Assembly (NCBI GenBank): GCA_002269645.1
Contig: NIVC01004744.1
Coordinates: 1 to 36,384, forward strand
Length of the DNA stretch: 36,384 bases
Source: Macrostomum lignano
Lineage: Eukaryota
Direction of reading: 5' to 3'
Shown here: piece by piece, positions 14,074-36,384 of the stretch
Layout of the letters: every line of letters begins with the position of its first letter
Numbering within the stretch: the first letter of the stretch is position 1
Notes under the pieces: generated by a model
Told to the model about the DNA's origin: nothing
Seen by the model: the letters and a program-made list of their open reading frames with translations, nothing else
Databases searched by the model: none
Position numbers and translations under genes: made by a program

Positions 14074-17000
14074 TCAAGCGCATGTGTAGGGGATAACAAA
14101 ATCAAACATAATCTTAACAAATCCTTGGGTACTGTTCGTGTTGCCGCCAGTGGTGGCCACGCAGCCGCTACCGCCACAAAAGGAGCCGCCGCCTCCGCCA
14201 GAAAGATCGTCATCAAGTCCGGCTCCGCCTCCGCTGTAGCCGCCACCAGCTCCAGCGGCACCTTTGGTACCACCGTCGGCCGTAGCAGCTCCTCCGCCGC
14301 CACCGAAGCCGCCCAAGCCGTAGGAAGAACCTTGGCTGGAGGAGCCGCCAATCCAATTTTCATCTTTGCTACCACCTCCGCCACCATTTTCGCTACTGGT
14401 CGCAACGGCTGCTCTACCCTTCCAGCCGGCGCCGCAGCCACCGTAATTTTCGCCTGAGTCCGCACTAGACGGATCATTACTGCCCGGTTGTCCATTTGTG
14501 CCTCCTATACCGATCTCAAAGGGCTGCATAAAATGGTTGTGTGTTGTCGTGAGTAAAAAAGACTCAGTTTTAATAAGACAGTAAATTTATCAAGCATATT
14601 TTGTAAATATTTTTACCGTATTTTCCTTAGCTATATTCTTTTTAATAGTAACCATACGTATCGTTATAATTAATTGTAACATTCAATATTCTGCAATTTT
14701 TACTATAAGAAAAATATCAAGAAATGCTAAAAGTATTGTAGTAGCATTTTCTATTTTACATCTCAATCTTTTAGCTTTTCTCTATAGTACGAGCTATTTA
14801 TAGCGGTCGAGCCAAAGTGATAAAATTTTTAATATACAAGCTACAGCTCGATAAGTACTATAGCTAGCTACAACTAAAACTAAAACTACAGCAAGCTATG
14901 GGTCTTCAATACTTACCAGGCAAAGTATGATTCACTTTTAGAAATGCAAAAACCTCATTTCTACTACTAAGAACTACTAAAATGGATAAATAGAGTAGAA
15001 TGCGCATATAGTTTAATAGTATAGTAGAATGCGCTAATAGTATAGTATAATAGTATAGGAGTATAGTATAGTATAGTAGAATGCGCTATAATTTTTCACT
15101 ATAGCCAAATTTACATGTAAGTACTTTACGAATTTCACAACGGTGTCAAGATTTGATGCAACTCAGGTCCTGATACGGTTTATTCGAATTGTTTCTGGTC
15201 TCTTTTTGAACATTTTTAGTGAATACTTTGTGAAAACTTGCTGGGTTGTGATGACATTGAATCCTGCTTTAAAACTTAATTCTTTGGTCCTTTTCTAATC
15301 TACTTAGTAGACGGGGATCAACTAAATGAGAAGGCTTGTTTTGAGCTTTGTCAAAAGGCGTTTAGTAGCTATCAAAACTGATTTATTATCGAGCATTATC
15401 TAAACAAAGTGTCATAAAATTACCTCGCTTGAGCCGTAAGAGTTTGAACCGTTTCTTCCAGCCTGACCGGGGCGTCCTGAAGAAAAGTGTTTAACCTTTT
15501 TTCAGTGGATGTAAATAACTTTAGGTTTATTTAGTACCATTACGAGTATGCGGTCTGGAGCCAAATCACTATAAATATAGCAGACTAGGTTCGTGCAGAG
15601 ACTACGAGCTACCAAAGAAAAACTTGGCAAAATATAAATTAAATTTATTTCACCGATCTACTCTGGAGATAGTTTTTCACCATGTACGCGATAGCAAGTC
15701 ATTTAACTTCAAAGCTGACGAAATTTTTTAATTTGTGAAAGCGCAGATGTTTCTTTAAACAATGAAATTTAAAGCGTTCTGATTTTAAGTGTCAAGTCAA
15801 AATTGTGCCCTAAAGTTTATATACTTCGAATTAAGATATTTTGGAATATTCTTACTGATTAGTACGTATTGAAAAGGAAACTACTTAAAATGAAAAGGTA
15901 AACGAACCATCGTTGTCTCTGGAGGCTCCGCCGCCACCGCCAGCCGACATGAGCGGCTCACTGTCCGATACACGGTACACAAAACTTCCACCGCCGCCGC
16001 CGCTTCCAACATTTTCGGATATCGCGTGGCCACCAGCCTGACCAACGACAATGGACAGCACGCTGCCGGCCGTCAGGCTGACATTTCCAGCGACCAGGGC
16101 TCCCCTACCGCCATATTTTTCTCTGTCAAAGTTGCTACCACCCTTGGCTCCGGCAATCTCAATTCGATAACAGCCAGTCACGTTTATCGTTGTCTGCTGT
16201 ATGCTGCCGTTCTGACCAGTGCTGGTGTCTGAAATGTGTTGTCGAATTAATTTTTACTTAACTATGGTTACAAAATGCTTTTACGCTCGTAATACGAAAA
16301 GCAAGGCTTACTTGTGAAGAGAAGAGTGATGTTGGTGCTTAATATCAAATTAATCACAGCGTCGAAATTCTTCAGCTTGAAAACTTCAGAGCCAGGCTCT
16401 GTCCCCAGGACTCTGGACTCGCTAGATCCTTTTGAGACAGTCACCAGCCGGCAAAGACCGCTGCTCGGTCGGTACTCGAGAGCAACGCAGTCCCTCATCC
16501 GGCACAGAGTCAGGCAACCCTGCAGGGATTCCACTCCAGAGATGTTACTGACTTGGCTGCTGACTCCGGAGTTGATCGTAAGGACACCATTGTGCTGCGT
16601 GTAGCGAGCAGGATTGCAGGATCCTGCAAAGCAATTGTAGAGCGTTAAAAAAGCTGCACTTATGTAATCTCCTGGTCTCTGCTTCTCCTTGCAGGCAGGA
16701 TGCCTGTTAGTAGCACCGTCTGCACCAGTTGTGTAGGCCGCACGACTTGGCGCTGATGCTTAACTTGTCAGCCGGAGTCACGGACACCGCTAACGTTCAC
16801 TTAGAGTAGGGGTCGGCAAACTCCGGCCCGAGGGCCGCATGCAGCCCGTGAAGCCTCTCTCTCTCCGTCCCGTCGGGTAGAGAGTCTCTCTCTCTCTCTC
16901 GCCTCTCTCCTCTCTCCCCCTTTCTCCTCTCTCCCCTCTCTCCCACCTCTTCTCGCCTTTTCTCTACTCTCATCCTGTTTGTCGCGTCTCATCTCTCATC

Positions 17001-18013: not shown

Positions 18014-18313
18014 TAATAATAATTGAGTACAACTGCCCCAATTGGGCCAGATGTGCAACCGACAGCTCAGCCGCAGCTATTGCGCGGTGCATCTGAAGGC
18101 TGCGTACGGCTGTTCATTCAAAGGAATGGGGGGGGTCGTCACACAAACCCAATCAGTTACCCCAGCTAATGCTGGCACCCATTTTACAGCTGGGTAAACT
18201 GAAGCAGTGCAGAGTCAAGTGTCTTGGCACAAATTGTTTCGAGTGGGTCGAGAATCGAACCTCCGACCTTCAAGTCGTGAGTCCGACGCTCTAACCACTT
18301 GGCTACAACTCCC
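18014..18313 (-). mobile_element. tRNA-derived SINE with a CORE-like central segment
   Basis: Minus strand: A box GTAGCCAAGTGG, B box GGTTCGATTC, then CAAGACACTTGACTCTGCACTGCTTCAGTTTACCCAGCTGTAAAATGGGT (resembles the MIR/CORE motif CTCAGTTT..CTGTAAAATGGG), ending in an (ATT)n tail. Confidence 0.8.
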
Positions 18314-20054: not shown

Positions 20055-20411
20055 TCAGCGGCGTAGGCAAGGGGGGATATGGGGATGGATCCCCCCGTGG
20101 GCCTGGTCGGTGGGTTTTTCCGGAAACTGCGTAGCCAGACGTGAGGACATTTCCTTGAGTGTGAGGAAGGGATTTTCCTCCAGCGTCTCAGTCAGGAAGT
20201 CTCTCATCTCGTTGTCAGCCTTGCAATTTTCTTCTCTCCGACCGCCACGAGGTAGGGATTCAACTCTGCCATGGAGGCGGAACTCCGCAGCGATCCTAAA
20301 GGCGGACGCTCTCTTGATCTTGGGAATTTGAGCGGCAGCTAGGATGGTTGATCCATTGTTTACTGCGTCGATCAGACGCTGACGGTTTGCTGCAGGAATC
20401 GATGGTGCCAT
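20055..20411 (-). pseudogene. Truncated Tc1/IS630-like transposase, N-terminal DNA-binding part only
   Basis: MAPSIPAANRQRLIDAVNNGSTILAAAQIPKIKRASAFRIAAEFRLHGRVESLPRGGRR...ENPFLTLKEMSSRL: paired-like HTH, PRGG linker and second HTH; the frame ends before any DDE domain. Confidence 0.7.
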
Positions 20412-20791
20412 CACAGTGAAATCCAAGGGGTCAGATGCAACCCAAGGGGTGAAGAAGGAGAGCTGGCTGAGGGTCGGAGGGTTAGAGCGATATCTGAAGG
20501 CTTTCACACTCAGTCTCATATTGAGCGTCTTATTCTCATTTTGATATTCCATTTTTTAGTCTATGGCCAAGCCATTCCTGCAGCCAATACTGGGCATGCT
20601 CTGGCCGTGGCTAGCCTGGCCTTGCTTGCCCTCTGGTAAATAAACCAGATAACACCACAAGATAACATTCGCTCAAACAAGATAACATGCCCTATTCCGG
20701 TTATGCAAAATGTTATCTTGTATGAATCTTGTTTGCGTGACGAAATCTTACGTTTCCTTGTTTCAAACAAGATTCAAAAAGGATTTGCTGA

Positions 20792-21330
20792 CCAGATAAC
20801 AGTCGGGTAATTCATGCGAATCCTGCAGGGAAACATCGTGTTATCCTGTTTGTTATCTTGTTTGTTATCCTGTCTGGCAAACAGGATTCGTTGACCAGGT
20901 AACAGTCGGGTAATTCATGCGAATCCTGCAGGGAAACATCGTGTTATCCTGTTTGTTATCTTGTTTGTTATCCTGTCTGGCAAACAGGATTCGCTGACCA
21001 GGTAACAGTCGGGTAATTCATGCGAATCCTGCAGGGAAACATCGTGTTATCCTGTTTGTTATCTTGTTTGTTATCCTGTCTGGCAAACAGGATTCGCTGA
21101 CCAGGTAGCAGTCGGGTAATTCATGCGAATCCTGCAGGGAAACATCGTGTTATGCTGTTTGTTATCTTGTTTGTTATCCTGTCTGGCAAACAGGATTCGC
21201 TGACCAGGTAACAGTCGGGTAATTCATGCGAATCCTGCAGGGAAACATCGTGTTATGCTGTTTGTTATCTTGTTTGTTATCCTGTCTGGCATCAAACAAG
21301 ATTTCCTGATCAGATAACAGTCGGGTAATT
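20792..21330. repeat. Left subterminal array: 5 x 103-bp units plus a partial unit
   Basis: Units start at 20792, 20895, 20998, 21101, 21204 (CCAG(A/G)TAACAGTCGGGTAATTCATGCGAATCC...). Confidence 0.93.
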
Positions 21331-21557
21331 TATGATAATAAAAGGCAGAAGGCACCGACAATCAAATTTCGCAGTAAAGAAGCGTATAAAAAGTTGGTGC
21401 TTCAAGATGTTGTGAGAAGCATCTATTTAACAGCGGGGTGTCAACTAAACGGCATCTCAACATGAACGAAAACATCTGGAGAACAGTGTGGCATAAGTCT
21501 GAGTTTCGGGAGTCCAGTTATAAGTAGATCTACTTATACTGTGGATACCAATTGATA

Positions 21558-23183
21558 TTACTGGATTGGTGATCTGCTGCGACCTGGTGTATCAGCTGGC
21601 GAGCTCGGACCTGCTGTACTCGGACGCGACTCTGGCGGCAGTCGACGCGTGAGCCAGACGTTTGAAAGACCGGGTCGCGCCCGCGGACGGCGATTAATGA
21701 GACCGCCGACGGGGACTTGCATTATATGTCGGCGCAATGGAACGACTCTGTAGTATTAAGTTAAATTGAATGGCGATGGATGACAGTTTCTCCGACATAT
21801 ACACAGCTATAAAAAACACAGTAAGGTACATACACTCTCGATTGTCTAGCTCTAACAGACAGTGACGGTGTGCCGACAGGCATTGCCATATTATACGACC
21901 GTTCACAAGTAGCGTCAGCTGTGTCGATAGAAGTTTCATTCGTAGCATAGTCGTCATCCGGAAACAACTGGCTTTCGTTGATCGGCTGCTCGTAGACCGG
22001 AGACGAAGTGAATGTCGTGCCATCTGATGCGCCGGCTTGCGCGGCGATGGCTTCGTTGTGCAGTTGCGTCCACAAAATGCCGACTGCACTGGAAACAGCT
22101 CTTACCTGATTGTCTTTGCAATCCCGTGTGCCAACGGTAATATCCAACCGACTTGGCGTTGCAGATGTCGCTAGTGCGATGGACGATCGTCCAACGGCGT
22201 CATCAACTGCGTCGTTCGAAGCAGTGACACCCTCTGGAAACAAGTGGCTTTCGTTGAACGACTGCTCGTAGACTGGAGACGAAGTGAATGGCGTGCCATC
22301 TGAAGTATCCGCTTGCGTTGCGATGGGGTCCTCGTGCAGTTGCGTCCACGAAATCCCGGCTGCGCGAGGGAAATATGTTACTTGATTGCCGCCGATCGGC
22401 GGTGTATTAAAGCCAGCCCACCAGACAGACATTAGCGAGCCGCAGGGAGCAGCGATATAGGATGGAACTACGCCAGCAGTTCCGCTGGTACGACCTACTG
22501 GTTCCACTGGCAAATCAGCCAGAAATAGTTCCAGTCGTACTACCTCTTGACGCAAGTAGCTGCCCGTGCTGCAGCCGCCGCATGCTTGTCTACGGCAACG
22601 CGGACAGCGAGGTGTCGTGCAGTCGACAATCTACAGAATTAGTTGTATATAGCGGCTGGTTTCGTTAAGGTCAGTTAGTTCGATAAAAAGTAAAACAGGT
22701 TATACGTACGTATGTGCATCCCGTATATACGTGTAGGATGTTACTAGGTACAATATTGACAGAGCGTTTGTCTGGACGACCGGGCGGTGCAAAAATTGTC
22801 GGTCGGCGCAACAGAATAACATCGCCACGACGCAACGGCCCAATCTGCGAGCGTACGCTGCCTTGGACACTGCAACCAATCATCCCGGTTGGGTCGCATG
22901 CATCAATTGTAAAAGCCGACGAGGATGACGCTGAGCAGATCTGCTGGTCGGTAACTCGTTGAATAAGTAGCAACAATATCGGAATCCTGTTCGTTGAGTC
23001 GCGAATGTGGCCGACAGTACAGAACTCTGACAGCTTCGTGCACAATTCGATCCCGATGTCGCCGATGGCGTTTCTCCAAGCAGGTGTATTCCATATGGAC
23101 TCCGAAAACGCATACTTTGCGTCGTCGGTACTCAGTCGCAGCGTGCTTAATGGACCAACCGTGCGATTTGAAGCGCTGGACAT
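21558..23183 (-). CDS. HROB/MCM8IP (DUF4539)-like OB-fold protein with a Cys cluster and low-complexity tail; probable exons 23183-22710, 22630-21834, 21747-21558
   Basis: WNTPAW..AIGDIG...NRIP.LLLLI...DPTGMIGCSVQGSV....LRRGDVILLRRPTIFAP......VNIVPSNILHVY matches the HROB OB-fold pattern (DPTG.M.G.VH, L..G.VLLL, F.P, N.T..N..HIY). Donor GTACGT at 22709 and acceptor at 22631 join in phase to ORF 21761-22555. The last exon and the true start are less certain. Confidence 0.72.
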
Positions 23184-24252
23184 CTGTAACAGAGAGAAGT
23201 GGAGGTTGTTCGGTGAGACGGCGTGGCCCGAAAACAGCGTCGGACACCAGCGATCATGAGATGGGAGACAGGATTGAAAGGACGTTGCATGGGTATTTGT
23301 TATTACCATTGACTTAACATAACTCCGCATATAATACAACTAACTCGGCACCCAGACACAAGTCTGTTGGGACAGAGTCCAGACCTCTAGCAATTGATTT
23401 AAATCAAAACGGGTCGTCCCCTAGAACTCGCACTACCACTTTTTCGGAATCTCGGCAAGACAGTACGTATGAAATGACTTAAAAGACGTAATAAAAATGT
23501 TCAGTATTTTTCATTTATAGTGGTGCCAAAAAGCACGACAATAAAGACATTAAAAAAGCAGCTAGGAAAAAGATTGGAAAAGCTGTATGTGTTATAAGTA
23601 ATACTTTAGAATATTATTAGTACTGTTAACGTATGTGGACGTTGTAGATGAAACTGACGTACGTGCTGCACTCGTTGATCCATGTTTACGGGGGAAACAC
23701 GTGCCCGAGGGCCCTCCTAGTACTGTAGGAGATGAATTCGTGTTATAAAAATAGATACTGAGTCACACAACATTACGTACTTTCTTAGAGAACTCATGCC
23801 TTCATTAAGTCAAGTAGGTGCACCGAATATGGTTCTAGTTCCCAAGGTATAATAGAGTTACACAGTATTACGTGCATTGGGGCAATTAGAATTCCCACGT
23901 ATAAGTACGGACTCCTGGATCATTTTTCGCGACAAGAAGTTGTGTCTGGCCTTTCTAAGTGCACGCCTACTTCAAATCGCAAGTCGCACTGAACATGAAA
24001 CAGTAAACCGTAAACGTTGAACAGAAAAAAAACTGGAAAACTGAAATATGAAGCACACAAAGATGAATGGCAAAATGCCGGACGAAATTTCAAACGATTA
24101 TCGTCCTGAATTAAAATAGCAGATCTGCTATGGGACGAAGTACTGTGTAAAAAAACAAACAAAAACAGTAAGTTCATTGTGCGAAAACAATTTATAGTAT
24201 TAATCCGTTATGATCCGTTATCCTATAAAACTACTCAACGCCGACAGTCAGC

Positions 24253-25896
24253 CTAAGGTTCGGCGGCTCCCTCGACGGCTTCCTCGGCTGTGCCGGCCAG
24301 CTGTGTCTTCTTAGCGGCGCGCCATCTTTTAACAGCGTCGGATTTTTTAGCCTTTTCTTCCGGAGTCTGCCTGCGTTTTATGGCCGTCTCGCGGCACTGA
24401 TAGTGCTGACGCCGAAACTCCTTTTCGTCTATGTTTACGCCAACGTGCTTGGCGTATGCCATAGCCACGGCTAGCTTGCCGTCGTCACATCGCTGGCCAC
24501 CTACTTGACCCTTGACGCGACCCGAGCAAGTCTCCCGCAAAAACTGGTCCTCGCTGAATAAAGCGCGAAGGACCGCTCGTATAAATGAGCCATTAGCGGT
24601 AGCCAATTTTTTTGCATCTGGCCGATCGGCCGATGCCAGTTGATGAATGGCTTCCGTTCGCTGCTCGATTTCGCGCTTGTCTTTCGGCTCTACTAGTATT
24701 CTCCTAAAGCCGTTGTCGTTTGACAGGCGAACCAATGCGCTTGGGTTGACTTCACGTGGCCGCATTGAAACAATAGCGTCGGCAGCCTGCACAGCACCCA
24801 TAGTCTGCTTCATTTGCGCCGACTGGTCAGTGGACCAATGGCTGTGGGCATATATACCAACTTCTCGAGGTTCGTCATCGATTAAAATGGGACCAGTTTC
24901 GTCTTGCCGATCGGCATACTCTGCGTCGACACTATCAGAGCCTCCGATTGTGCATCTGGCAGCATGTACTGCACTGAGTAGTCGCTCACACCGGCGCTCA
25001 ACCACGCTCATAACCTGCTGCATTTTGGCGTCTCGACTGGAGTCAGTGTTCCCGTTCTGCGCCATTTGTTCTTCAAGCGAATGCAGTTGAGCGCGAAGTT
25101 GATCAACTTCGTTCAACAACTGTGTGTTACTTTGCGCCAGATGTGCCGAACGTTCCCTCTCATTTTCAATTTCATTTTCCAGAGCCCGAATGCGATCACC
25201 TGTGATGAAGTGCGTTCAGATAAATATATAGAGTTGCTCTTATAGAATAATTTATTGACTACGTATTACATACAAATATATTGAAATTACGCAGTAAACC
25301 AATAGTTACGCACGTTGCTCGTCCACAATGGAAACATGCGAGCGCAATTGGTTGGTTAGTGCACAACACGAACCACAAGGATTCGGCGCACTATTAGTTT
25401 GCAACGGGCCCGACGCGGATGCGACGCGTTGCGCAGCAGCAATGCTACTGTAGGGTCCACTCCATATAGTGGCGCCATATCTTGCGGCCGAGGCAGTCTT
25501 TGTTTTGGCTGTCACGACGACAATGCGACAACCAACAGTGGGTTGCTCATGACGATCGTCAAGAGCAACAATATCGGTGCTAAGTATCGCACCTCTGTCG
25601 TTGTTGCTGTCGTAAATGACCGCCCACGCGGACGAATCTGCAGATTTGTAACCGCGCATTCCGTCAGGGGCACATTCTGCACTTGCACTTTTATTTTGGC
25701 GGTTCTTCTTCTTTGTTGACCTCGCGCTGTCGGACCCATCGAATATTTCCGACTGAATTTCCGACGAAGCTTTCGGGACTGTCGATTGGTCGTTTGGTCG
25801 TACACCCTTGCGCGGTCGCTTTTCGGCTTGTTCTGCGTCTATATCCACTGGATGTTCGTCCTCTTGTAAGTGAGTAACGCAGTTCTTCTTGCCCAT
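24253..25896 (-). CDS. Coiled-coil + C-terminal BEN-domain protein, ~509 aa, exons 25896-25314 and 25199-24253
   Basis: Phase-1 intron 25313-25200 joins the two long ORFs. Heptad region RIRALENEIENER...LLNEVDQLRAQLHSLEEQ. C-terminal FIRAVLRALFSEDQFLRETCSGR...DDGKLAVAMAY...FRRQHYQCRE fits the BEN pattern (F.R.LL..LF..E.L...T..G...LD..K). Confidence 0.7.
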
Positions 25897-26676
25897 TACT
25901 TTCCAAATCAAGCAGACGACTGGAAAACGATTTTTAACAGCATATTTACTTCAAATATCGCATTGTACAATGTTTAAGAATAGAAAAGGACGCTCTCAAG
26001 ATACGATCCTAATTTCCACAAAATCTTACGTACACGCTAAAGTTAGATCTAAGGAATTTCGTTATAGGGAGAGTGGACGGCCAACCAATCGATGTGGTGA
26101 ACTACATGCTAGGTTCGATGCAACGTTGCAATCACGAAACACGAGACATAGTGTAATGATGGACGCAAAATGCGTGAATTGCGCATATTTACTGATTGGT
26201 GTATGATACGAGGTCCGTTATGATTCATTTTAATGAAAAAATTAAAACGGCAGATTTCATACATATTTAAAGTGATTAAGATTCATTCACATTGTCGTCA
26301 TAGTGGTTGTGGAAGTATACTGGTGTATAAACGAATGACCATTGGTGTAAAGATCGTGTAAACTTGTGAACCTTCGCCTTATTTAATGCCTGCGTGAATG
26401 AGTCTTATAACGTTCATAGATAAAGTTGAAGGCGTTTATAAATAGGGTGGCAACATACAGTGGAACAGATTTTATCTCAGCAATGAGCGGTACTATACTT
26501 GACGTTACAAAGACTGCTTAATCAGTTCGTACAAATTGTGGGGTATACGCAAACAAACGTTTGAGGTGACAGCTTACTTAAAATTGTCTTTTCCGCGAAC
26601 TTATTAAGCAACGTCAATACATTACAATGGGCTTGGACAGTACAAGGAGCACACAGGCGTATAGGCCCGAGCAAAT

Positions 26677-29457
26677 TCACGAAAAAGATAGTTGCGCATG
26701 CGGCAGCGCTACTACATGCGTGTCGCTGACAGCACATGATCCCACAATCATTTTGATAGGAACACGAATAACATAGCCGCCAATGTCACCGAAGGGATCG
26801 CAAGCCAGCTTCCGGACGTGGATGAGTCGGCAACCTCGATTTGGCGCATCAACCGGAACGGCCACGAGCACTGATAGAGGATCCTCCATCGGTGCGGCCA
26901 GACGGAGCGGTTGCATCAGTAGATGTAGATCGCCTACATCCTCATCCTCTTCCAATTCGTAGACGCGACCAAAGTCTATCGCTGACCGACCAGCGTCAGT
27001 CCAGACGGCAACAAAGCTGGAGACAACTCTTTTCTGTGACATAGATTGTCTGAACACATCGATCATTGTGCCGTCATGCAATGTAACTCGCTCCCATTTA
27101 CTCGGGTTTCCAGCATATCTTCTAGGTCGTGAAACTGTGCCACACCTGATGTTCTTCGTTGTCATGCGTCTGGCTACTGGCGTGTCAGTCAACTGAAGAT
27201 CTTCAGTTGTCTTGTCCGCCAATTGTGCCACTAATAGCTCAGTTTGGATGACGTTCGCTATTTCTACGTCGGTCGCTCGCGAACCGCGTATGCGTTTACG
27301 AATACTACAATGAAATGACTCGAACAGCGATGCTGATAACTGGTGTATTGGCCCTGCCAACTCTGCGTGCATCAGGGTATGCACGCATACCTGATGAGCG
27401 TTATAAGTCAATGCCCGATTCGAGAACATCATCGGGAGTAGGCGATGGAAGTACGATAATGTCGTTCGCACATGTGTCAGCTCGCGGATCGAGGAACCAA
27501 CGCATGACAATGCGAACATTGCGGACGATAGAGCCAGCAGTAGCTGATAGTACCTGCCGTGATCATAGCATGCAAGGAAATCTTCCAGTACCATCGGACC
27601 GTAAGCTAACATCCACATTTCAAAATCGTGGCCCCGATACCTCTTCAATAGGTTTAGTGACCTTGGTCCGCGTCTCTGAACACTACGCGGCACTCGAATT
27701 CTTGCGAGCCGTTCATCAATCAGGCTAATCCGTCGGTACAAATCGGGGTTTCTCGACGTCTGGTCTGGCTTTTGATGTCGTATTAGGAACAACTGGTACA
27801 TCAGATAGCCGGTCAGACCAGCACAGGTTTGGTGCAAATAACACGGCGGGCAACCCCTAATGTAGTCGAACCCGGCCAGTTCACTCAGTGGAGACTTGGC
27901 TCGCACTCCAAGCGTGTCTGTCTTGTCGTCAGTACGAGCCACGCGCATTCTGTCTCTTTCATATTCGTGCCGATCGGCAAGCATGTTAGTGTCGGTGACG
28001 CACCGAAACTCTGTCTGTGTACACCCACGTCTGACAGCGGCGTTCAGCATAGCGTTGGTGATTTCGAGCGGAAACATACGTCCGGATCCAAACGGCTGTT
28101 TTTTTGTTCGAATATAACATTTTTCGCATCCGTATATCGCGTTGAATCGCTTCATACCTAGTGCATCCGCTCGTGCTGGGGCATCGAAGATGGCCTGGAA
28201 AGGGTGCAATCTAAGGATTTGCTTATCGCCGTGTCCGTCTACATATTCGACGCCTTGGAACCTTAGATCGTTCAACAGACGAACAACAATTGGTAGGAAA
28301 CTTTCCGCATGCAATTTAACGTGTCCAGCCCAGACTCCGCATACAATCACGTACTTATACTTCATGCGTTCGTACACCTCTGTTACAGACATGTACACTG
28401 GACAGACCTCGACGTTACTGCTTTTCCGCAACGAAAATCCGTCTGAACATAGCGTGTACGACAGATCGCATCTACGTCGAGGTTCAATCGACGCTAGGAA
28501 CTCCCTGTACAGTGCACTGTTGACGTAGTGTAACTGACGTCTAAACATGTCGTCTGACGGTTGATCAGCCGGCCACACAACAGTCTCCAGCATTCCGCGT
28601 CGGATGCAGCGCCGAAGTTGATCTTTTGCGTCACATAGCCAGAAGCTTGCAACTTCTTCGCTACCGCAAGTTGAACACGTCGGCGCGTTTCGACCGAGTC
28701 GATTTTGTCTACACTTCGCACACACAGTGTAGCATTCTGAGGTCGGTAATGCAGATCTGCATTCTTGTCGAAAGCGAGCTTTCACAACCTCAGAAAGTAC
28801 ATGCGGCGACCGCGGCACATCAGCGCTAGGCATCAGTTTGCGTAATAAACCTAGTAGTTCTCTTTTCTGCTCTCTGCATGCTTTCCACTTGGAGCAGTAG
28901 TCCGCAATTAATGTGGCCGCTTCTCCTGTCGTTAGAAGCACATCCGCTTCGGCTATTTTATGAAATGGTCTGTCTATGAAAATAGGATCAGCTCTCGAAC
29001 TGGCTGGATCGCTCTGGTCGGATGCGTCGCTGCCCTCCTCATTGAGGCTGGCTGGGTCGATCTGGTCGGATGCGTCGCTACCCTCTTCGTTGAGACTGGC
29101 TGGGTCGCTCTGGTCGGATGCGTCGCTGCCCTCCTCATTGAGGCTGGCTGGGTCGATCTGGTCGGATGCGTCGCTACCCTCTTCGTTGAGACTGGCTGGG
29201 TCGCTCTGGTCGGATGCGTCGCTGCCCTCCTCATTGAGGCTAGGGACCAGAGTGTTTGATGGCAGATCTGCCAGATTCGCGCGTTTGTCGCGTAATCGAC
29301 GTTGCCGTAATGCTTGCATTCTCTGCTGGCCAGTCAATGCGGGTGCGGCCCTTTTACGTATGCCAAGCCGCCAATTTCTCATATAGTGCGTTGCATTGTG
29401 CGTTTCGTCCGTCTGTTCCGGCCCTGCAGACTGTGCTGAGGTGCCGGCCTTGTCCAT
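26677..29457 (-). CDS. CACTA/EnSpm-family DDE transposase, 926 aa, intronless
   Basis: Motifs in the expected order: CSDGFSLRKSS, VCPVYMSVTE, CGVWAG, FDAPARA, FNAIYGCEKC, GVRAKSPL, CYLH, IDERLARIRVP, YGPMVL, TYNAHQ, SASLFESF (Transposase_21/DUF4218-type). Confidence 0.88.
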   Translation of the reverse strand: MDKAGTSAQSAGPEQTDETHNATHYMRNWRLGIRKRAAPALTGQQRMQALRQRRLRDKRANLADLPSNTLVPSLNEEGSDASDQSDPASLNEEGSDASDQIDPASLNEEGSDASDQSDPASLNEEGSDASDQIDPASLNEEGSDASDQSDPASSRADPIFIDRPFHKIAEADVLLTTGEAATLIADYCSKWKACREQKRELLGLLRKLMPSADVPRSPHVLSEVVKARFRQECRSALPTSECYTVCAKCRQNRLGRNAPTCSTCGSEEVASFWLCDAKDQLRRCIRRGMLETVVWPADQPSDDMFRRQLHYVNSALYREFLASIEPRRRCDLSYTLCSDGFSLRKSSNVEVCPVYMSVTEVYERMKYKYVIVCGVWAGHVKLHAESFLPIVVRLLNDLRFQGVEYVDGHGDKQILRLHPFQAIFDAPARADALGMKRFNAIYGCEKCYIRTKKQPFGSGRMFPLEITNAMLNAAVRRGCTQTEFRCVTDTNMLADRHEYERDRMRVARTDDKTDTLGVRAKSPLSELAGFDYIRGCPPCYLHQTCAGLTGYLMYQLFLIRHQKPDQTSRNPDLYRRISLIDERLARIRVPRSVQRRGPRSLNLLKRYRGHDFEMWMLAYGPMVLEDFLACYDHGRYYQLLLALSSAMFALSCVGSSIRELTHVRTTLSYFHRLLPMMFSNRALTYNAHQVCVHTLMHAELAGPIHQLSASLFESFHCSIRKRIRGSRATDVEIANVIQTELLVAQLADKTTEDLQLTDTPVARRMTTKNIRCGTVSRPRRYAGNPSKWERVTLHDGTMIDVFRQSMSQKRVVSSFVAVWTDAGRSAIDFGRVYELEEDEDVGDLHLLMQPLRLAAPMEDPLSVLVAVPVDAPNRGCRLIHVRKLACDPFGDIGGYVIRVPIKMIVGSCAVSDTHVVALPHAQLSFS
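29002..29241 (-). repeat. 5 x 48-bp (16-aa, SLNEEGSDASDQ(S/I)DPA) acidic coding repeat in the transposase N-terminus
   Basis: Alternating variants give a 96-bp higher-order period. Confidence 0.93.
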
Positions 29458-30559
29458 CCTGGAGAAGTCAGATTTCGACTGTTCTGTAACGAAACGGTAT
29501 AATAATAATAATCGGAGGAACTACATGACATTCATGTATGCAATAGGTTTAGATGAATGTGTCAACTCTATATAGACGTGGGTAGCTATTCTAGATCACT
29601 ACGGTATCCTACTTAAAATGAGGGGATCAATGACTTCTGCTAATACTACTGATTATTGATTGTGATTGATTGATTAGTGATACTGATTGTTACTACATAC
29701 GATTGTTCTAACATATGGGCGGATGAACGGTGACACTTGAATTTTTGCAATAGAAACCATGACTAGATAGTTCAATGAAATGAATGCAAGGCAATGCAAT
29801 CGGGATCTGTAATAAAACGGAAGCACACGTTTTCGTAAAAAACAAGTTAAGTAACAAGAGGTGGAATTTGCTTACTGGGAAATGCATAAAAGTCAATAAT
29901 GAGATAGGATGGATACGAATAGTTAAAAGAAAACATAATTGCACAAATGTAACGCGTAATAATGTCATATTAAAGTACTTAGGTTTCGATATGTTCTCCG
30001 TTTGTTGGCTGGCAGATTTGGCCTGCTAGATTGTTCATCTGCTGCTATAGCTACCAAACGGTGCTATATTCACTCTGCTTTTATCTTCACTCTGATGTAA
30101 CGGCGCTCAACGGCGCTCAACTGCACTGTCCTCAGTTACTAATAAATGAAAAAATGGTACGAAACTGCAAGCATCAAATGCCGAACTGACAAGTAAGTAA
30201 TAAACGAAAAAATACTTTACTAGTTACTTGGGTACGCGGGTTTGGCATCCGATATTCGAATACGGCCAAACCTCTGTACTTTGGCTGGCAGATCTGCCAG
30301 CCTCCGCACAGACACCAGACTGGCCACATTTGCCCTTCTAGATTGTTCAGAAGTCCGTTCTGACAGTTTCTGTGCACGCGTATTCAATTTCAACCGATAA
30401 CAATTCACAGCTAGAACAGGTACATAACATACGTCCAATTACAGTCGGAACTGGGCCTTGGATCGGGGCAGGTGCACTTTATCCTGCACGAACACCTGGG
30501 ACTGCAGAAGCAGTGCACTCGATGGGTGCCCCGTTCGCTGTCACAGAAGCAGGGACGGG

Positions 30560-30930
30560 CCAGGGAGGACTGGTGTGGGAAAATGTTAAGAGAATTCGCC
30601 TGAGGAGTATCAAGGAAGGTTTTTGACATCGTTAGTGGTGATGAGACCTGGGTGTACCAGTACGATCAGAGCCAAACCGTCAGTCGACAGTATGGTGCTT
30701 CTCCGGAGATGACCATCCAACCAATGTGCAGAGGCCCCGTAGTGTCAGAAAGAAGATGGTCGCATCTCTCAGCACGGTTGACTTATGACTTCCGTAGCAA
30801 AAGGGAGTCAAGTTGGTCTCCCACCCACCCACCTTACTCAAATGACATGGCCCCCTACGACTTTTTTGCTTTGTTTCGTTATTAGCATTATAACCATACC
30901 ATTCTAAAAAGTTTCGGATTGACCCTCGTA
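30560..30930 (+). mobile_element. Internally deleted mariner remnant nested in the giant element
   Basis: DIVSGDETWVYQY (30625-30663) and HPPYSNDMAPYDFF (from 30826) are the mariner TGDETW and YSPDLAP motifs, only ~190 bp apart. Right TIR ...TTTCGGATTGACCCTCG + TA ends at 30930; left TIR not found. Confidence 0.75.
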
Positions 30931-30992
30931 TACAGGGCCGCAACATGCACAAAAACTGTCCGACTGAACTATACAAAAATAGACACAACGCT

Positions 30993-33093
30993 TCACAAGT
31001 CACAAATTAGTTCATGAACCGGGCAATCGCCGTCCCTGTGCGTACACTCTGGACCAAAGTCCTTCGGTATGGAGCACAGCAACTCGTCGATCGACGGGTT
31101 GTCTGTGCTACACGCGGCATCGGCATGTCGAGTGGCAAGCAGGCGCGGGACGCTGACCCTGTCAGGCAGTAGGCCCATGCTGTCGAAAGCGTCTCTGCGA
31201 CGCGTCGCCTCGTCGCCGGCGCACTTTAACAGTTCAACGCTGGGCTCGCCGGCATTAAAATTTAAATAATGGCCTTCTACGACCACAGTCATGATGCTGT
31301 AGCATAATACAATATGCTGCAGACACCTCAGCTCGTTTGGCCCAGCTTTAAGCAGTCTGGCGCAGGCGTCGCCGAGCAGTGCGTCAGTTATTCGGCGACG
31401 ACCGCCGCCACTGTTTCCCTGACGCCCGCCAAGCTGCTCAGTATACCCAAACTCCATGAACAGCGCCTGCGATGCCGTGCACAGCGGTGCATCGCAATCG
31501 ACACTGTCCTGCATACTGTGGTATGCAGGCTTTGATTTTGAAGGCAGTTTAAACGCTTTCAGCGTATGCCGAAGCATATACTGGGCCGCGTCAAAGTTAG
31601 AAGTGCCGTGTCGATGGTTTAGAGTCTGATGCAGACCCAATACAAGCACGGCAAGACGCTGGGCTAGTAGTCCGTTCTCTATGTGCAACACCATTGTTGA
31701 CTTGGCCAAGCAGATCTGCTGGCCCTCGTTGATGAAATGATTGGTTAAAGGCTGCACCAAACGTGCTACATTGGCCGGCCAGTCGAAAATTGACACTGCA
31801 GTTAGTGCATCGCACCCGCATTGTACGGCGCGTATGCGCGCCTCTTCCCTGCCTGCGGAGATGGCATTTGCATGACGCTCTCCGAGTGTCAGGCGGCGAT
31901 TTGGTGGGTTTAGCGGCTGAAACACTAATTGTTGATTTTGTACACAAAGTCGAAAAACGTCCTCACAGTGCGTGCCGACGAAGCCGCTAATGTCACGGTC
32001 GGCCATCGATGTACTGACACCGCGAATAGCATATGCTAATGGCTGGCTAGTCAGCATTGAGAACCGCCGTTCAACTGTGTCAAATGGCGTGCCACATTCA
32101 TCTCCCGCGTCCACTATGGCGCACAGTATACGGACGATTGACTCTATACACATCATCTGCAAAGGTATTATTGTATGCGCGTTTATCAGTAGCATTGCTA
32201 TGGCATTACAAGCAGTATATGAATAGTCGAATTCTACTTACGCGTGCGTCGTCCATAATTTCAGCGAAAGTTTTTCTAATCGATTCGACGGCGGCAGCGT
32301 CTGCAGGGTCGACGGATGCAGCTGCGACAGGAGCGCAATACTGGCCGCGACGCTGGGCGTTGGCTGGCAGATCTGCCGGCCGCCGCCCATGTGTCGGCTT
32401 TGCCACCTGGCCGGAAGGTGTTTGCGCTGATGCCGCATTTCTTGGTGGTCCCCTGCTAGGACAGTCGTTCTGAGCTGCTGCAGCTGCGATAGGTGCGCGA
32501 GATTGGCCGAGACGCTGGGCGTTGGCTGGCAGATCTGCCGGCCGCCGCCCATGTGTCGGCTTTGCCACCTGGCCGGAAGGTGTTTGCGCTGATGCCGCAT
32601 TTCTTGGTGGTCCCCTGCTAGGACAGTCGTTCTGAGCTGCTGCAGCTGCGATAGGTGCGCGAGATTGGCCGAGACGCTGGGCGTTGGCTGGCAGATCTGC
32701 CGGCCGCCGCCCATGAGTCGGCTTTGCCACCTGGCCGGAAGTGGTTTTCGCTGATGCCGCATTTCCTGGCGTCTCTTCATCGACGACGATGTCGCTGCCG
32801 TCGACGTGCAGCAGCCCTTTGCAGTGCACATTCACGAATTCGCGCACACTAGCGCAGCCAACGCTCTGGACTGCCTCAACAAGCGTTTGGCGCCGGACAG
32901 CTTGGCACGTTTTGTTGATTTCTGTCAAACTTTTACGAGTATTCCTTTGTTCAAATGATTGCTGTGGCCGAGGTACACGAATCATTGTTATTAGCTGTTC
33001 GCGCAGCTGCGTGACCGAGTAGTCGACACAGTTTGTACCAATGGTGGTTTGCATTTCGCAGTATGATGCAAGGTCTGAAATTGCAACATACAT
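30993..33093 (-). CDS. ~671-aa protein with two LOTUS/OST-HTH-like domains separated by a repeat linker, plus a C-terminal domain of unknown type; exons 33093-32242 and 32156-30993
   Basis: Perfect GTAAGT donor (32241) and TTTGCAG acceptor (32157) join ORFs 32206-33093 and 30993-32195 in phase 0. Two related segments: KSLTEINKTCQAVRRQTLVEAV.SVGCASVREFVNVHCKGLLHV and VRILCAIV...CGTPFDTVERRFSMLTSQPLAYAIRG...ISGFVGTHCEDVFRL. The gene model is well supported; the LOTUS call is a by-eye match. Confidence 0.6.
32343..32770 (-). repeat. ~2.6 x 162-bp (54-aa) coding repeat
   Basis: GACGCTGGGCGTTGGCTGGCAGATCTGCC at 32349, 32511, 32673. Confidence 0.93.
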
Positions 33094-33542
33094 TTTTAAT
33101 TGTATCGTCGAATTGAACGCACGGTGTTAAAGTACATGTTCTATCTCAGTGAATATTTCTGCCAACTGCAATTAATGATAAACATTTGCTAAAATTACTA
33201 GCTGCATACAGGTACGAATATATGTATACTAGTCTCCTGCCAACGTCCATACACTGAACCATCAAAGATACTAAAAATGGGAAAAAATGCTTCATTGCTT
33301 GCTTGTATTCTGATATACTAACAAAATTTCCTATACACTAAAGTTGAGCTATATGTAGTTATCAGTACGATATGCGCTCCGTTACCCTTTGATATACGCG
33401 CTAGTATAATGAAACTACCAATTTTAAAATGATAAGAAAGAAATGAATGCAGAACACGTAAACAGACAAACTTCTATTCGTAGATTTATTTATGTCAGCT
33501 GTACAGGATCTGTACGACAATACCAAGACAAGATTACCGACT

Positions 33543-33857
33543 GCTGCCTTGAACCACACTAGAAGCGAGGATTGATTATCCGTCGCAGGTCAGCTTATCA
33601 AAGCTGCCTTGAGCCACACTAGAAGCGAGGATTGATTATCCTTCGCAGGTCAGCTTATCAAAGCTGCCTTGAGCCACACTAGAAGCGAGGATTGATTATC
33701 CGTCGCAGGTCAGCTTATCAAAGCTGCCTTGAGCCACACTAGAAGCGAGGATTGATTATCCGTCGCAGGTCAGCTTATCAAAGCTGCCTTGAGCCACACT
33801 AGAAGCGAGGATTGATTATCCGTCGCAGGTCAGCTTATCAAAGCTGCCTTGAGCCAC
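33543..33857. repeat. 60-bp satellite array 1 (5 units + partial)
   Basis: GCTGCCTTGAGCCACACTAGAAGCGAGGATTGATTATCC(G/T)TCGCAGGTCAGCTTATCAAA head to tail, no spacers. Confidence 0.95.
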
Positions 33858-35436
33858 AACAGATATGGTTACCGACCGTTGTAGTCTGTATAGACTACTC
33901 GCTTGACTTGATCTGCTCACGGCTGGTGCAACTGCAAACGCCTTAGACAAACCAATGGAGCATGCACCGACAAAAATCGGGTTAGCGTCTATCTTAATAG
34001 GAAAGTTGCTTTGCATACTGGGCCAGATAGAGCTATTTGGAACCATGCCACAGTCTCCGTCTAGACACCCAGCTGTGCCAAACAATATGGTTGGCTGACT
34101 ATGCTTCTAAGCGTCAAATATGACGATAGAATCATTCAGCCGGTTGACACACTAAGCAGCTTTGATAGACTACATGCCAGTGGTAGTCAAACCTCTCGCA
34201 AACAATCAGGGCGCAACAATTTTTCAATTGTCACCTGTACGGAGGATGGGCACAGCCTCACATTACGGACGCTACAGTGCCGCCGTAAAGCAGATCAATT
34301 CACCTTGCACTTTCGAGGCTTTATTATCCCTCGGATTAAAGATTGATCCGCCTAGTCAAATAAAAGTGACTACTCTTAGCCGCTGCCTTGAGCCACACTA
34401 GAAGCGAGGATTGATTATCCGTCGCAGGTCAGCTTATCAAAGCTGCCTTGAGCCACACTAGAAGCGAGGATTGATTATCCGTCGCAGGTCAGCTTATCAA
34501 AGCTGCCTTGAGCCACACTAGAAGCGAGGATTGATTATCCGTCGCAGGTCAGCTTATCAAAGCTGCCTTGAGCCACACTAGAAGCGAGGATTGATTATCC
34601 TTCGCAGGTCAGCTTATCAAAGCTGCCTTGAGCCACACTAGAAGCGAGGATTGATTATCCGTCGCAGGTCAGCTTATCAAAGCTGCCTTGAGCCACACTA
34701 GAAGCGAGGATTGATTATCCGTCGCAGGTCAGCTTATCAAAGCTGCCTTGAGCCACACTAGAAGCGAGGATTGATTATCCTTCGCAGGTCAGCTTATCAA
34801 AGCTGCCTTGAGCCACACTAGAAGCGAGGATTGATTATCCGTCGCAGGTCAGCTTATCAAAGCTGCCTTGAGCCACACTAGAAGCGAGGATTGATTATCC
34901 GTCGCAGGTCAGCTTATCAAAGCTGCCTTGAGCCACACTAGAAGCGAGGATTGATTATCCGTCGCAGGTCAGCTTATCAAAGCTGCCTTGAGCCACAACA
35001 GATATGGTTACCGACCGTTGTAGTCTGTATAGACTACTCGCTTGACTTGATCTGCTCACGGCTGGTGCAACTGCAAACGCCTTAGACAAACCAATGGAGC
35101 ATGCACCGACAAAAATCGGGTTAGCGTCTATCTTAATAGGAAAGTTGCTTTGCATACTGGGCCAGATAGAGCTATTTGGAACCATGCCACAGTCTCCGTC
35201 TAGACACCCAGCTGTGCCAAACAATATGGTTGGCTGACTATGCTTCTAAGCGTCAAATATGACGATAGAATCATTCAGCCGGTTGACACACTAAGCAGCT
35301 TTGATAGACTACATGCCAGTGGTAGTCAAACCTCTCGCACACAATCAGGGCGCAACAATTTTTCAATTGTCACCTGTACGGAGGATGGGCACAGCCTCAC
35401 ATTACGGACGCTACAGTGCCGCCGTAAAGCAGATCA
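33858..35436. repeat. Near-identical 440-bp direct duplication (33858-34297 and 34997-35436), each copy following a 60-bp array
   Basis: Constant offset of 1139 bp; the ORF track also shows identical ORFs at 33816 and 34955. Confidence 0.93.
34382..34996. repeat. 60-bp satellite array 2 (10 units + partial)
   Basis: Same unit as array 1, starts at 34382 and every 60 bp to 34982. Confidence 0.95.
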
Positions 35437-35976
35437 GTTGTCTCATTAGGGCGAGGTTTCATTACCCCTCGCTTCTTAAGAGGAATTAGCGCCGCTGACC
35501 AAACGGATGCCAGGGATTGCCTGATGGGATAACCATTTGCTGGGGTCTGTATTCAGCGGTTTTCCATCGGAGGCTTCCTCTCAAAATCCCCATGGTACTT
35601 GTAATGGATGCCCGACTGATTCCCACTGGTCCTAAAATTTTTCCGGATCATCACCGCCTGGTACTTGGCTGAACTTCGGCTCAAGGGGAGCTGATCTGGA
35701 TGATTTTTCCGGATCACTGGGGAATTCCGACTGAAGTCTCGAAATCTCACCCGGAGCATTTTCATCTGGAATCCTACTGAAATTCGGTCTACACCCAGAA
35801 TTCAGTAGAGTTCTGGGTGAAAACTTGACGGAAAATCCAACCGGAACAGTTTCCTTTTCCCAAAATACTACCAGATCATATTTCTGGACCTTTTTCCGGG
35901 AAAAAAGTGCTGTTCCGTGCCAAAAAAACTGATTCGGGCTTCATCAGAAATAATAAATTAAAAATCGGGCGAAAAT

Positions 35977-36384
35977 CCGATTCAAACAAGATTCAGTCAA
36001 ACCAGATAAACATAGAAATATCTGGTGGCGAATCTTGTACTGTTATCTGATTTTCAAACAAGATTCGCGCATGTTATCGGGCGAAATTCCGATTCAAACA
36101 AGATTCAATCAAACAAGATAACAAAAAATATCTGGTGGCGAATTTCTACTGTTATCTGATTTTCAAACAAGATTCGCACCATGTTATCCTGGTGAAATTC
36201 CGATTCAAACAAGATTCAATCAAACAAGAAAACAAGAATTATCTGGTGGCGAATCTTGTCATGTAATCTGATTTTCAAACAAGATTCGCGCCATGTTATC
36301 TGGTGAAATTCAGATAACTCACCAGATAACAGTCAAACAAGAAAACAAAAATTATTGGTGGCGAATCTTGTCATGTAATCTGAT
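35977..36384. repeat. Right subterminal array: ~111-112-bp units, continuing past the window end
   Basis: CCGATTCAAACAAGATTC at 35977, 36089, 36200; shares CAAACAAGAT, GTTATC/GATAAC and GCGAATC with the 103-bp left array. Confidence 0.88.

Follow-up and report, generated by a model that had tools for sequence, protein, structure and literature searches.

The contig NIVC01004744.1 of Macrostomum lignano (assembly GCA_002269645.1), analyzed here over its entire 36,384 nucleotides and hereafter called the window, carries in its right-hand part a large mobile element. In the interior of this element, many GATC tetranucleotides stand at the center of perfect palindromes whose arms differ from one site to the next. 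Judging from its sequence, the element appears to be a DNA transposon distantly related to the CACTA/Mirage/Chapaev (CMC) type. It spans at least 15.7 kilobases (kb), all its genes lie on the minus strand, and the window ends within its right array. An earlier note on this DNA spoke of four genes; the palindrome-bearing region contains seven minus-strand open reading frames (ORFs) of at least 200 amino acids, which are to be taken as ORFs and not as gene models.

The transposase ORF (26677 to 29457, minus strand) encodes 926 amino acids and is 45% identical over 755 residues to P0001, a protein encoded on a Tara Oceans contig (L001). Protein searches with the transposase returned this one relative at 45% identity and four others at 23-25%. 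Evidence for a Tnp2-type enzyme comes from a weak DUF4218 match (E = 0.042, below the cut-off) and from P0002, a distant homolog at 24% identity, in which PF02992 is present as a faint match. Two further ORFs are conserved on L001, where their homologs keep the same order: ORF201 (25306 to 25911, minus strand; 27% over 142 amino acids) and ORF288 (24253 to 25119, minus strand), which has an N-terminal coiled coil and a C-terminal helical domain and is conserved in five distant proteins as well. The OB fold announced in the earlier note is real: an ORF at 22671 to 23339 (minus strand) is of the HROB type (Pfam PF15072, E = 4e-9). ORF400 and ORF295 (30993 to 33093, minus strand) have no homologs and no domains, and no relatives or domains were detected for ORF264.

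Accessory proteins were annotated by Pfam at a relaxed threshold, by sequence and profile searches of the PDB and by single-sequence AlphaFold models. For ORF400, the PDB sequence search gave no match and the model was unusable (pLDDT 36). The ORF288 model (pLDDT 49) provided no usable fold, and the fold search based on it was uninformative. The BEN domain that had been proposed earlier was not recovered: Pfam gave no PF10523 match in ORF288 or its five homologs, a family-profile search of the PDB gave no BEN match, and the fold search on the low-confidence ORF288 model found no BEN fold. No methyltransferase domain was found in the ORFs of the element, and a search of the entire window against Rfam returned no family at the gathering threshold.

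Both ends of the element are repetitive. The left end (20629 to 21394) has tandem repeats of 103 base pairs (bp), rich in (A/G)GATAAC, and holds no GATC palindrome of at least 10 bp. The right part (32711 to 36384), clipped by the end of the window, comprises 60-bp tandem arrays and subterminal repeats of about 111 bp, and none of its 10 GATC sites is palindromic. Subterminal (A/G)GATAAC arrays are found at both element ends, with (A/G)GATAAC / GTTATC(T/C) motifs in the 103-bp units at 20647-21312 and in the units of about 111 bp at 36042-36324. The 60-bp tandem arrays (33423-35101) lie inside a duplication of about 1139 bp in the right part, which has no long ORFs and no palindromic GATC. Tandem repeats are also present in coding sequence, as 48-bp units at the transposase N-terminus (28999-29286) and as three 162-bp units in ORF295 (32317-32802), each with one palindrome.

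We counted palindromes in positions 21500-32710, the ORF-bearing interior of the element. This region has 51 GATC sites, 21 of which lie inside perfect palindromes of 10-20 bp, 19 of these being at least 12 bp long. Extending the arms outward from each GATC leaves 27 sites bare, 3 at 6 bp, none at 8 bp and 21 at 10 bp or more. All 18 palindromes listed in the earlier note, and the copies at 32528 and 32690, were recovered at the same positions with the same sequences; the site at 26877 had been missed. The other 15 palindromic 4-mer centers account for 0-2 palindromes of at least 12 bp each. They total eight, where a count by eye had given four, against 3.0 +/- 1.8 in shuffles, which is a marginal excess. 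GATC is thus at the center of 19 of the 27 palindromes of this length in the region.

Controls were the shuffles that the earlier note had proposed, and their densities remain far under those observed. One thousand dinucleotide-preserving shuffles contain on average 0.18 GATC palindromes of at least 12 bp (maximum 3), compared to 19 in the actual sequence. Synonymous-codon shuffles within the seven ORFs, which leave the amino acids unchanged, contain 0.40 (maximum 4), compared to 16. This represents an enrichment of about 100-fold and 40-fold, respectively, and bears out the claim that codon usage is not the cause. In the first 20.6 kb of the window, only one of 59 GATC sites (at 16614) lies in a palindrome of at least 12 bp, in line with the single long one reported previously. 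In the repeat-rich element ends, none of 11 GATC sites is palindromic (P = 0.0045 if the interior rate were to apply). Within the window, the pattern is therefore specific to this element and confined to its ORF-bearing interior. The observation, made on a single element copy, is confirmed as real, statistically strong and highly non-random.

Four of the palindromes lie outside ORFs: TATAAGTAGATCTACTTATA (20 bp, 21519 to 21538), ATAGCAGATCTGCTAT (16 bp, 24116 to 24131, immediately downstream of ORF288), TTAGATCTAA (10 bp, 26043 to 26052) and GGCTGGCAGATCTGCCAGCC (20 bp, 30283 to 30302). These non-ORF sites tend to be longer than the coding sites, which mostly measure 12 bp. ORF264 carries two 14-bp palindromes, TGGACGATCGTCCA (22180 to 22193), for which TATACGACCGTTCA is a possible paralogous stretch, and CCGCCGATCGGCGG (22389 to 22402), which begins at the first base past a 177-nucleotide internal repeat. 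The OB-fold ORF has one site, AGCAGATCTGCT (12 bp, 22934 to 22945). In ORF288, we find GGCCGATCGGCC (12 bp, 24620 to 24631), encoding SADRP in a segment that is gapped and variable in the L001 alignment, together with TGCCGATCGGCA (12 bp, 24905 to 24916) and CGAAGTTGATCAACTTCG (18 bp, 25094 to 25111). The ORF201 site, TGACGATCGTCA (12 bp, 25550 to 25561), reaches 28 bp if one A.A mismatch is allowed.

The transposase gene contains five sites. The one missing from the earlier list, GAGGATCCTC (10 bp, 26877 to 26886, encoding EDPL), extends to 28 bp if two transition-type mismatches are allowed. It is followed by CAACTGAAGATCTTCAGTTG (20 bp, 27190 to 27209) in a segment without conservation to P0001, by a second occurrence of TGCCGATCGGCA (12 bp, 27968 to 27979, encoding LADRH) and by AATGCAGATCTGCATT (16 bp, 28748 to 28763), both in variable segments, and by TGGCAGATCTGCCA (14 bp, 29260 to 29273) at the N-terminus. 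ORF400 carries CGTCGATCGACG (12 bp, 31085 to 31096; 22 bp if one G.T mismatch is allowed) and a second occurrence of AGCAGATCTGCT (12 bp, 31709 to 31720). ORF295 carries the 12-bp palindrome GGCAGATCTGCC in copies 1, 2 and 3 of its 162-bp repeat (32366 to 32377, 32528 to 32539 and 32690 to 32701, respectively). As stated in the earlier note, all three frames are used besides non-ORF DNA: GAT encodes Asp at 9 sites, ATC encodes Ile at 4, the tetranucleotide is split between codons (xGA-TCx) at 2, and 4 sites are non-ORF. Coding sites in the transposase, ORF288 and ORF201 occupy stretches that the relative does not conserve, often beside small gaps; for 4 of the 6 sites that could be aligned, the window protein exceeds the relative by 1-5 residues at the palindrome.

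The sequence around the central GATC is partly fixed and partly free. A G at position -3 and a C at +3 are present in 20 of the 21 sites, and C is at -2 in 13 of 21. The form G-N-N-GATC-N'-N'-C had been claimed for 17 of 18 sites, which is correct; the added site 26877 fits it too, and the sole exception, lacking G at -3, is TTAGATCTAA. Position -1 is A at 12 sites, C at 7, G once and T once, and +1 is always its complement. Eight different dinucleotides occupy positions -1 and -2, and position -4 shows no preference. If half-sites with the observed arm spectrum were independent, about four asymmetric sites would be expected per symmetric one. Instead, GATC sites with both G at -3 and C at +3 are symmetric in 20 cases and asymmetric in only 3 (21571, 21980, 26928), close to the 1.9 or so expected by chance among bare GATC. 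Since asymmetric sites occur only at chance level, independent half-site recognition is ruled out, and we rejected this model; furthermore, GCAGAT half-sites that are not part of a palindrome show hardly any enrichment. These observations support the view that complementarity itself, and not a fixed half-site, is constrained, as the earlier note had proposed when arguing against a fixed protein site.

The pattern is of an all-or-none kind. Counting Watson-Crick pairs over the four positions that flank each of the 51 GATC sites gives 0 pairs for 10 sites, 1 for 13, 2 for 6, 3 for 3 and 4 for 19. The non-palindromic class fits a binomial(4, 0.25), and the 30 GATC sites outside the palindromes behave as chance predicts, leaving no decayed intermediates. 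Centers that differ from GATC by one substitution and have arms of at least 4 bp were also sought in the region: none was found where 1.9 were expected, again a sign that decayed sites are all but absent. At most about four sites are weak candidates for a nascent or decayed state, the clearest being CGGTTGATCAGCCG (28558 to 28571), a near-palindrome with one T.G mismatch. In bare GATC sites, G at -3 or C at +3 is present in 13 of 30 cases, which is the chance rate; local sequence therefore does not decide which GATC converts. Further out, complementarity declines from 97% at arm positions 1-4 to 54% at 5-8 and 37% at 9-12, then reaches the 25% background. Arm lengths are variable and roughly geometric, and several sites are near-palindromes of 22-28 bp with one or two mismatches.

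The sites are also evenly spaced. For the 19 independent sites, the mean gap is 602 bp with a coefficient of variation (CV) of 0.45, more regular than random placement (P = 0.0003) or random subsets of existing GATC sites (P = 0.001), whereas the 30 bare GATC sites are randomly spaced (CV 0.88). A strict periodicity was not significant (best period 129 bp, P = 0.10).

The two strands differ in a way that is harder to interpret. Among mismatches at arm positions 5-12, read on the plus strand, G.T outnumbers A.C by 20 to 3 (P = 5e-4), chiefly through A.C depletion, while the 76 core pairs include 0-1 wobble. Folding predictions give the plus strand, antisense to the genes, a slight advantage in stability (P = 0.015). 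Together, the mismatch bias and the modeled stability hint at a single-stranded, strand-specific state. The plus-strand bias may also resemble what deamination leaves on a strand that is frequently single-stranded; none of the explanations considered so far accounts for the bias cleanly.

Not all sites arose separately. The 20-bp palindrome at 30283 is paralogous to the 32366 module: a 47-nucleotide module, 77-79% identical, is common to it and to the repeat at 32366/32528/32690. These sites are thus not all independent, contrary to the earlier description of them. A further stretch related to the 30283 site, at 29996-30020 (...GGCTGGCAGATTTG), is not palindromic, and comparison of the two paralogs yielded two mutually incompatible alignments. 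In ORF264, the 14 bp of the site at 22180 and its possible internal paralog differ by 4 changes, among them a change from T.T to G-C that affects both sides. Homology of the 22389 site to the internal paralog is doubtful because this site sits at the repeat boundary. L001 is too diverged to serve as an outgroup for the ancestral state of the sites.

We looked for other copies of the family and for relatives sharing the pattern. Exact look-ups of the transposase, ORF400 and the helicase of a neighboring Helitron gave no record, and metagenome scans with protein patterns and with a back-translated RGCPPCYLHQ motif yielded no further family copy. The Tara Oceans contig L001, the 45% amino acid relative, has no GATC-palindrome enrichment, which suggests that the pattern is evolutionarily young. 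L001 does contain nine copies of TACATGTA (857-3764 and 6914), mostly upstream of the transposase gene, in a TG/TA-rich low-complexity context. The tick locus L002, which encodes a distant transposase, likewise has no GATC-palindrome enrichment and carries fixed motifs only: clusters of CCAGTTGCAACTGG flank the gene on both sides and are accompanied by GCGCATGCGC arrays (3205-3318, 12187-12293, 1870-2416, 18077-18271). By analogy, these clustered fixed palindromes resemble usual subterminal binding sites. L001 and L002 were the loci compared, L003 being too short.

DNA flanking the element in the window includes a decayed Helitron (797-5395, minus strand), with Helitron_like_N (4155-4904), PIF1 (1357-2094) and Pif1 2B (797-1531) domains in differing frames. 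Protein matches to its helicase range from 42 to 67%, the named ones being from spider and flatworm. In this GC-rich region (57%), two GATC palindromes of 10 bp have the G-N-N-GATC-N-N-C form (3022, 3508). An AT-rich stretch separates the Helitron from the large element and includes a glycine-rich ORF of 151 amino acids (14074-14529, minus strand) with no Pfam match. Abutting the left end of the large element, an ORF of 165 amino acids (20055-20552, minus strand) with a weak HTH_32 match probably corresponds to the N-terminal part of a Tc1/mariner-like transposase. The observed/expected CpG ratio is 0.9-1.2 in every segment of the window. As CpG is not depleted, there is no sign of germline CpG methylation in the host, a situation in which other DNA marks could have a place.

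How could such sites arise and persist? We favor, with a probability of about 0.4, the reading that selection maintains the palindromes as dyad or hairpin sites and that each was made in one step by strand-switch copying at GATC. The sites would then be cis-acting, dyad-symmetric DNA, kept by the transposon lineage across its gene-bearing interior at a density of approximately one per 600 bp. To create a site, a strand ending at or near GATC would switch template and copy a few bases of its own complement, either by snapping back or by moving to the other strand, with the self-complementary GATC as the seed. Such copying would explain why arms are arbitrary yet perfectly Watson-Crick. That template switching can produce a perfect stem in a single step is documented (PMC8794818, PMC7954356). 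Maintenance would require that the dyad be read as intrastrand pairing and not as two independent half-sites, presumably in the form of a GATC-looped hairpin or a protein-stabilized cruciform whose third stem position is a G-C pair; the sites may pass through a single-stranded state. The likeliest readers would be the ORF288 coiled-coil product, the OB-fold protein, the transposase N-terminus or a host factor. ORF288 is a conserved coiled-coil protein and a candidate reader. We favor maintained sites because of their even spacing, their all-or-none distribution and their restriction to the gene-bearing interior. Further points in favor are the enrichment itself, the constraint on complementarity, the gradual loss of pairing outward from GATC, the greater length of non-ORF sites, the placement of coding sites in unconserved protein segments and the plus-strand bias.

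Several points weigh against this interpretation. All evidence comes from a single element copy, and comparisons with internal paralogs in ORF264 are ambiguous. Perfect cores are weak hairpins, of about -2 to -8 kcal/mol with RNA parameters, and unaided cruciform extrusion is impossible for a 12-bp palindrome. A test for a stability threshold, relating arm length to GC content, found AT-rich arms to be longer only as a non-significant trend (rho = -0.46, P = 0.065). Folding of only one strand would leave both the palindromic GATC loop and the G.T-free core unexplained. No reader could be pinned down, BEN being undetected and ORF400 and ORF295 uninformative. The choice of GATC over other 4-bp palindromes as a seed is unexplained, a difficulty that would be the same if the sites were mere by-products of mutation. 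Lastly, the all-or-none pattern could simply reflect very young sites, and the data do not separate a structural from a mutational constraint.

That mutational alternative, the main rival and in our view only a little less likely, holds that the palindromes are function-less scars. A process linked to the life cycle of the element would repeatedly make short inverted copies at GATC, for instance when excision is followed by repair synthesis, or when GATC is nicked or acts as a roadblock. Copies would survive where proteins tolerate them, and all would be recent or re-made at the same GATC, hence the lack of decayed ones. Much of the evidence sits comfortably with such a process: the arms are arbitrary and perfectly Watson-Crick with 0-1 G.T in the core, their lengths are roughly geometric, hairpin energies are weak, coding sites occupy variable, indel-prone protein segments, and the lack of the pattern in the 45%-identical relative indicates youth. 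Template-switch mutagenesis is in addition well documented, and the marginal excess at other centers (8 versus 3.0) is also in its favor. However, scars predict neither the even spacing (P about 0.0003-0.001) nor the absence from the repeat-rich ends (P = 0.0045). We know of no GATC-specific nick or stall in eukaryotes. The chance rate of G at -3 or C at +3 in bare GATC sites (13/30) also argues against scars, as does the lack of decayed sites in a lineage old enough for its internal repeats to be 20% diverged.

A more ambitious version of the maintained-site reading, which we consider somewhat unlikely, is that of a structure-defined 'self' code. Evenly spaced, variable-arm GATC dyads across all genes would be read by an element protein, either as hairpins or cruciforms or as methylated GATC within a dyad. 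They would serve to mark, protect or process the element, and would be regenerated by strand-switch copying. The 'self-marking code' suggested in the earlier note is speculation of this kind, which draws some support from the even spacing.

Duplex sites for a homodimeric element protein, for example a BEN-like ORF288 dimer, with the consensus GC(A/C)GATC(T/G)GC, appear improbable. This model would have a parallel in the fixed palindromic motifs of related elements: clusters of fixed palindromes exist in distant CMC relatives (CCAGTTGCAACTGG in L002, TACATGTA in L001), and the subterminal motif CAGATAAC of the present element has CAGAT in common with half of the sites. The consensus is indeed strong (G at -3 in 20/21, C at -2 in 13/21), and the N-terminal coiled coil of ORF288 is conserved in the relative. 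However, a dimer binding duplex DNA is unable to sense the complementarity of two variable dinucleotides. It should bind asymmetric duplexes of the GCAGATCGGC type equally well, and independent half-sites with the observed arm spectrum predict about four asymmetric sites per symmetric one where 3 and 20, respectively, are observed. Whatever base stands at the variable -1 position, its complement stands at +1; half-sites on their own show no enrichment, and BEN was not detected.

Slightly less credible still are stem-loops in the sense mRNA, with a GAUC tetraloop read by a loop-specific RNA-binding protein, as Smaug recognition elements are, so that every transcript would be marked. Stems that vary around a constant loop, the restriction of sites to the ORF-bearing region and the presence of at least one site in each of the seven ORFs would all be consistent with this, although such coverage has a P of 0.22 by chance. 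Sense-mRNA hairpins fit poorly because wobble is absent from the core (0-1 G.U-type pairs in 76) and is depleted at outer positions on the sense strand (3 versus about 14-17 expected), being favored only on the antisense (plus) strand. Moreover, an RNA reader has no need of a palindromic loop, and four sites are outside ORFs.

We give very little credence to excision footprints, in which hairpin opening would have left P-nucleotides from former internal transposons, or to insertions of a small mobile palindromic unit. Hairpin opening on flanking DNA, as in hAT/V(D)J-type reactions, does yield palindromes of arbitrary sequence, and the 1-5 extra residues at 4 of 6 alignable sites are in keeping with this. 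Nevertheless, direct repeats resembling target-site duplications are not in excess beside the palindromes (2 nucleotides at 2 of 19 sites versus 1.2 expected, 3 nucleotides at none), GATCGATC was looked for and is absent, a fixed GATC centre is not predicted, and every ORF is still in frame. Arms have no common sequence, except in the 30283/32366 module, and the sites are therefore not copies of a mobile unit; on these grounds we rejected both variants. Chance, composition or an assembly or sequencing artefact has a near-negligible probability: despite the single window and the frequent use of GATC as a restriction or methylation motif in laboratory workflows, chance is excluded by the shuffles, the palindromes keep seven long ORFs and encode sensible residues, adjacent DNA of the same window is unaffected, and no artefact known to us would yield palindromes of 12-20 bp that are in frame and have unique arms.

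Should the sites be functional, as we favor, this would be the first eukaryotic transposon known to spread a recognition element defined by structure rather than sequence through the genes it carries. Selection would have had to optimize DNA symmetry together with protein sequence, and the element would offer a concrete system for studying how mobile elements distinguish self from host DNA. If they are mutational, a very active, GATC-targeted process of templated repair would be acting on one element; this would constitute a mutational signature of a new kind and a natural record of template switches.

In our literature searches, we found no description of element-wide, evenly spaced palindromes with a common center and variable arms in a eukaryotic transposon. 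The closest counterpart in sequence is the cyanobacterial HIP1, GCGATCGC, a GATC-centered, G/C-flanked octamer over-represented 15- to 300-fold, which is found within genes in every frame, is kept by selection, has a non-random spacing and is of unsettled function (PMC5861425, PMC4390886). The G/C-flanked GATC core, the over-representation in genes in all frames, the non-random spacing and the lack of a settled function are common to both. However, HIP1 is a fixed sequence found throughout bacterial genomes, with a link to GATC and CGATCG methyltransferases (PMC5861425, PMC4390886), whereas the arms in the window vary by site, with eight inner dinucleotides, and belong to a single eukaryotic transposon with no evident methyltransferase. 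The window has a single GCGATCGC, at 3509 in the Helitron, and the element has none. Nor is the genome-wide abundance of HIP1 matched within the window, where the pattern ends at the borders of the element interior.

A report on Nematomorpha describes coding palindromes of up to 284 bp in mitochondrial genes, by an unexplained mechanism and with no common center mentioned in its abstract (PMC6649704). Both cases involve perfect inverted repeats of arbitrary sequence inside functional coding genes, with protein and dyad symmetry both kept, but the present palindromes are short (10-20 bp), nuclear, located in a transposon and always centered on GATC. Template-switch, or quasi-palindrome, mutations create or perfect hairpins in one step while leaving length unchanged (PMC8794818, PMC7954356, PMC3820800). 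They are the only documented mutational route to such arms, but known events are scattered, have no fixed center, and are neither element-specific nor evenly spaced.

The hairpins of integron attC sites, IS200/IS605 elements and REP/RAYT systems are defined by intrastrand pairing, with co-varying arms and one active strand. Co-varying arms and strand specificity are shared features, if we compare the latter to the plus-strand G.T bias observed here. These systems are bacterial, are read by tyrosine recombinases or HUH enzymes and have longer stems with specific extrahelical bases; unlike the sites described here, they are not dispersed through coding sequence, and the present element lacks both enzyme types. 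Lastly, the 12-bp motifs of TnpA in En/Spm and the VANC motifs of VANDAL21 are element-specific and present in many copies, and their presumed reader is a protein that the element encodes. Like them and like the motifs in L002 and L001, the sites described here are short, element-specific and repeated many times. While those motifs are fixed in sequence and clustered in non-coding ends, the GATC palindromes are variable, complementary and evenly distributed over the coding interior.

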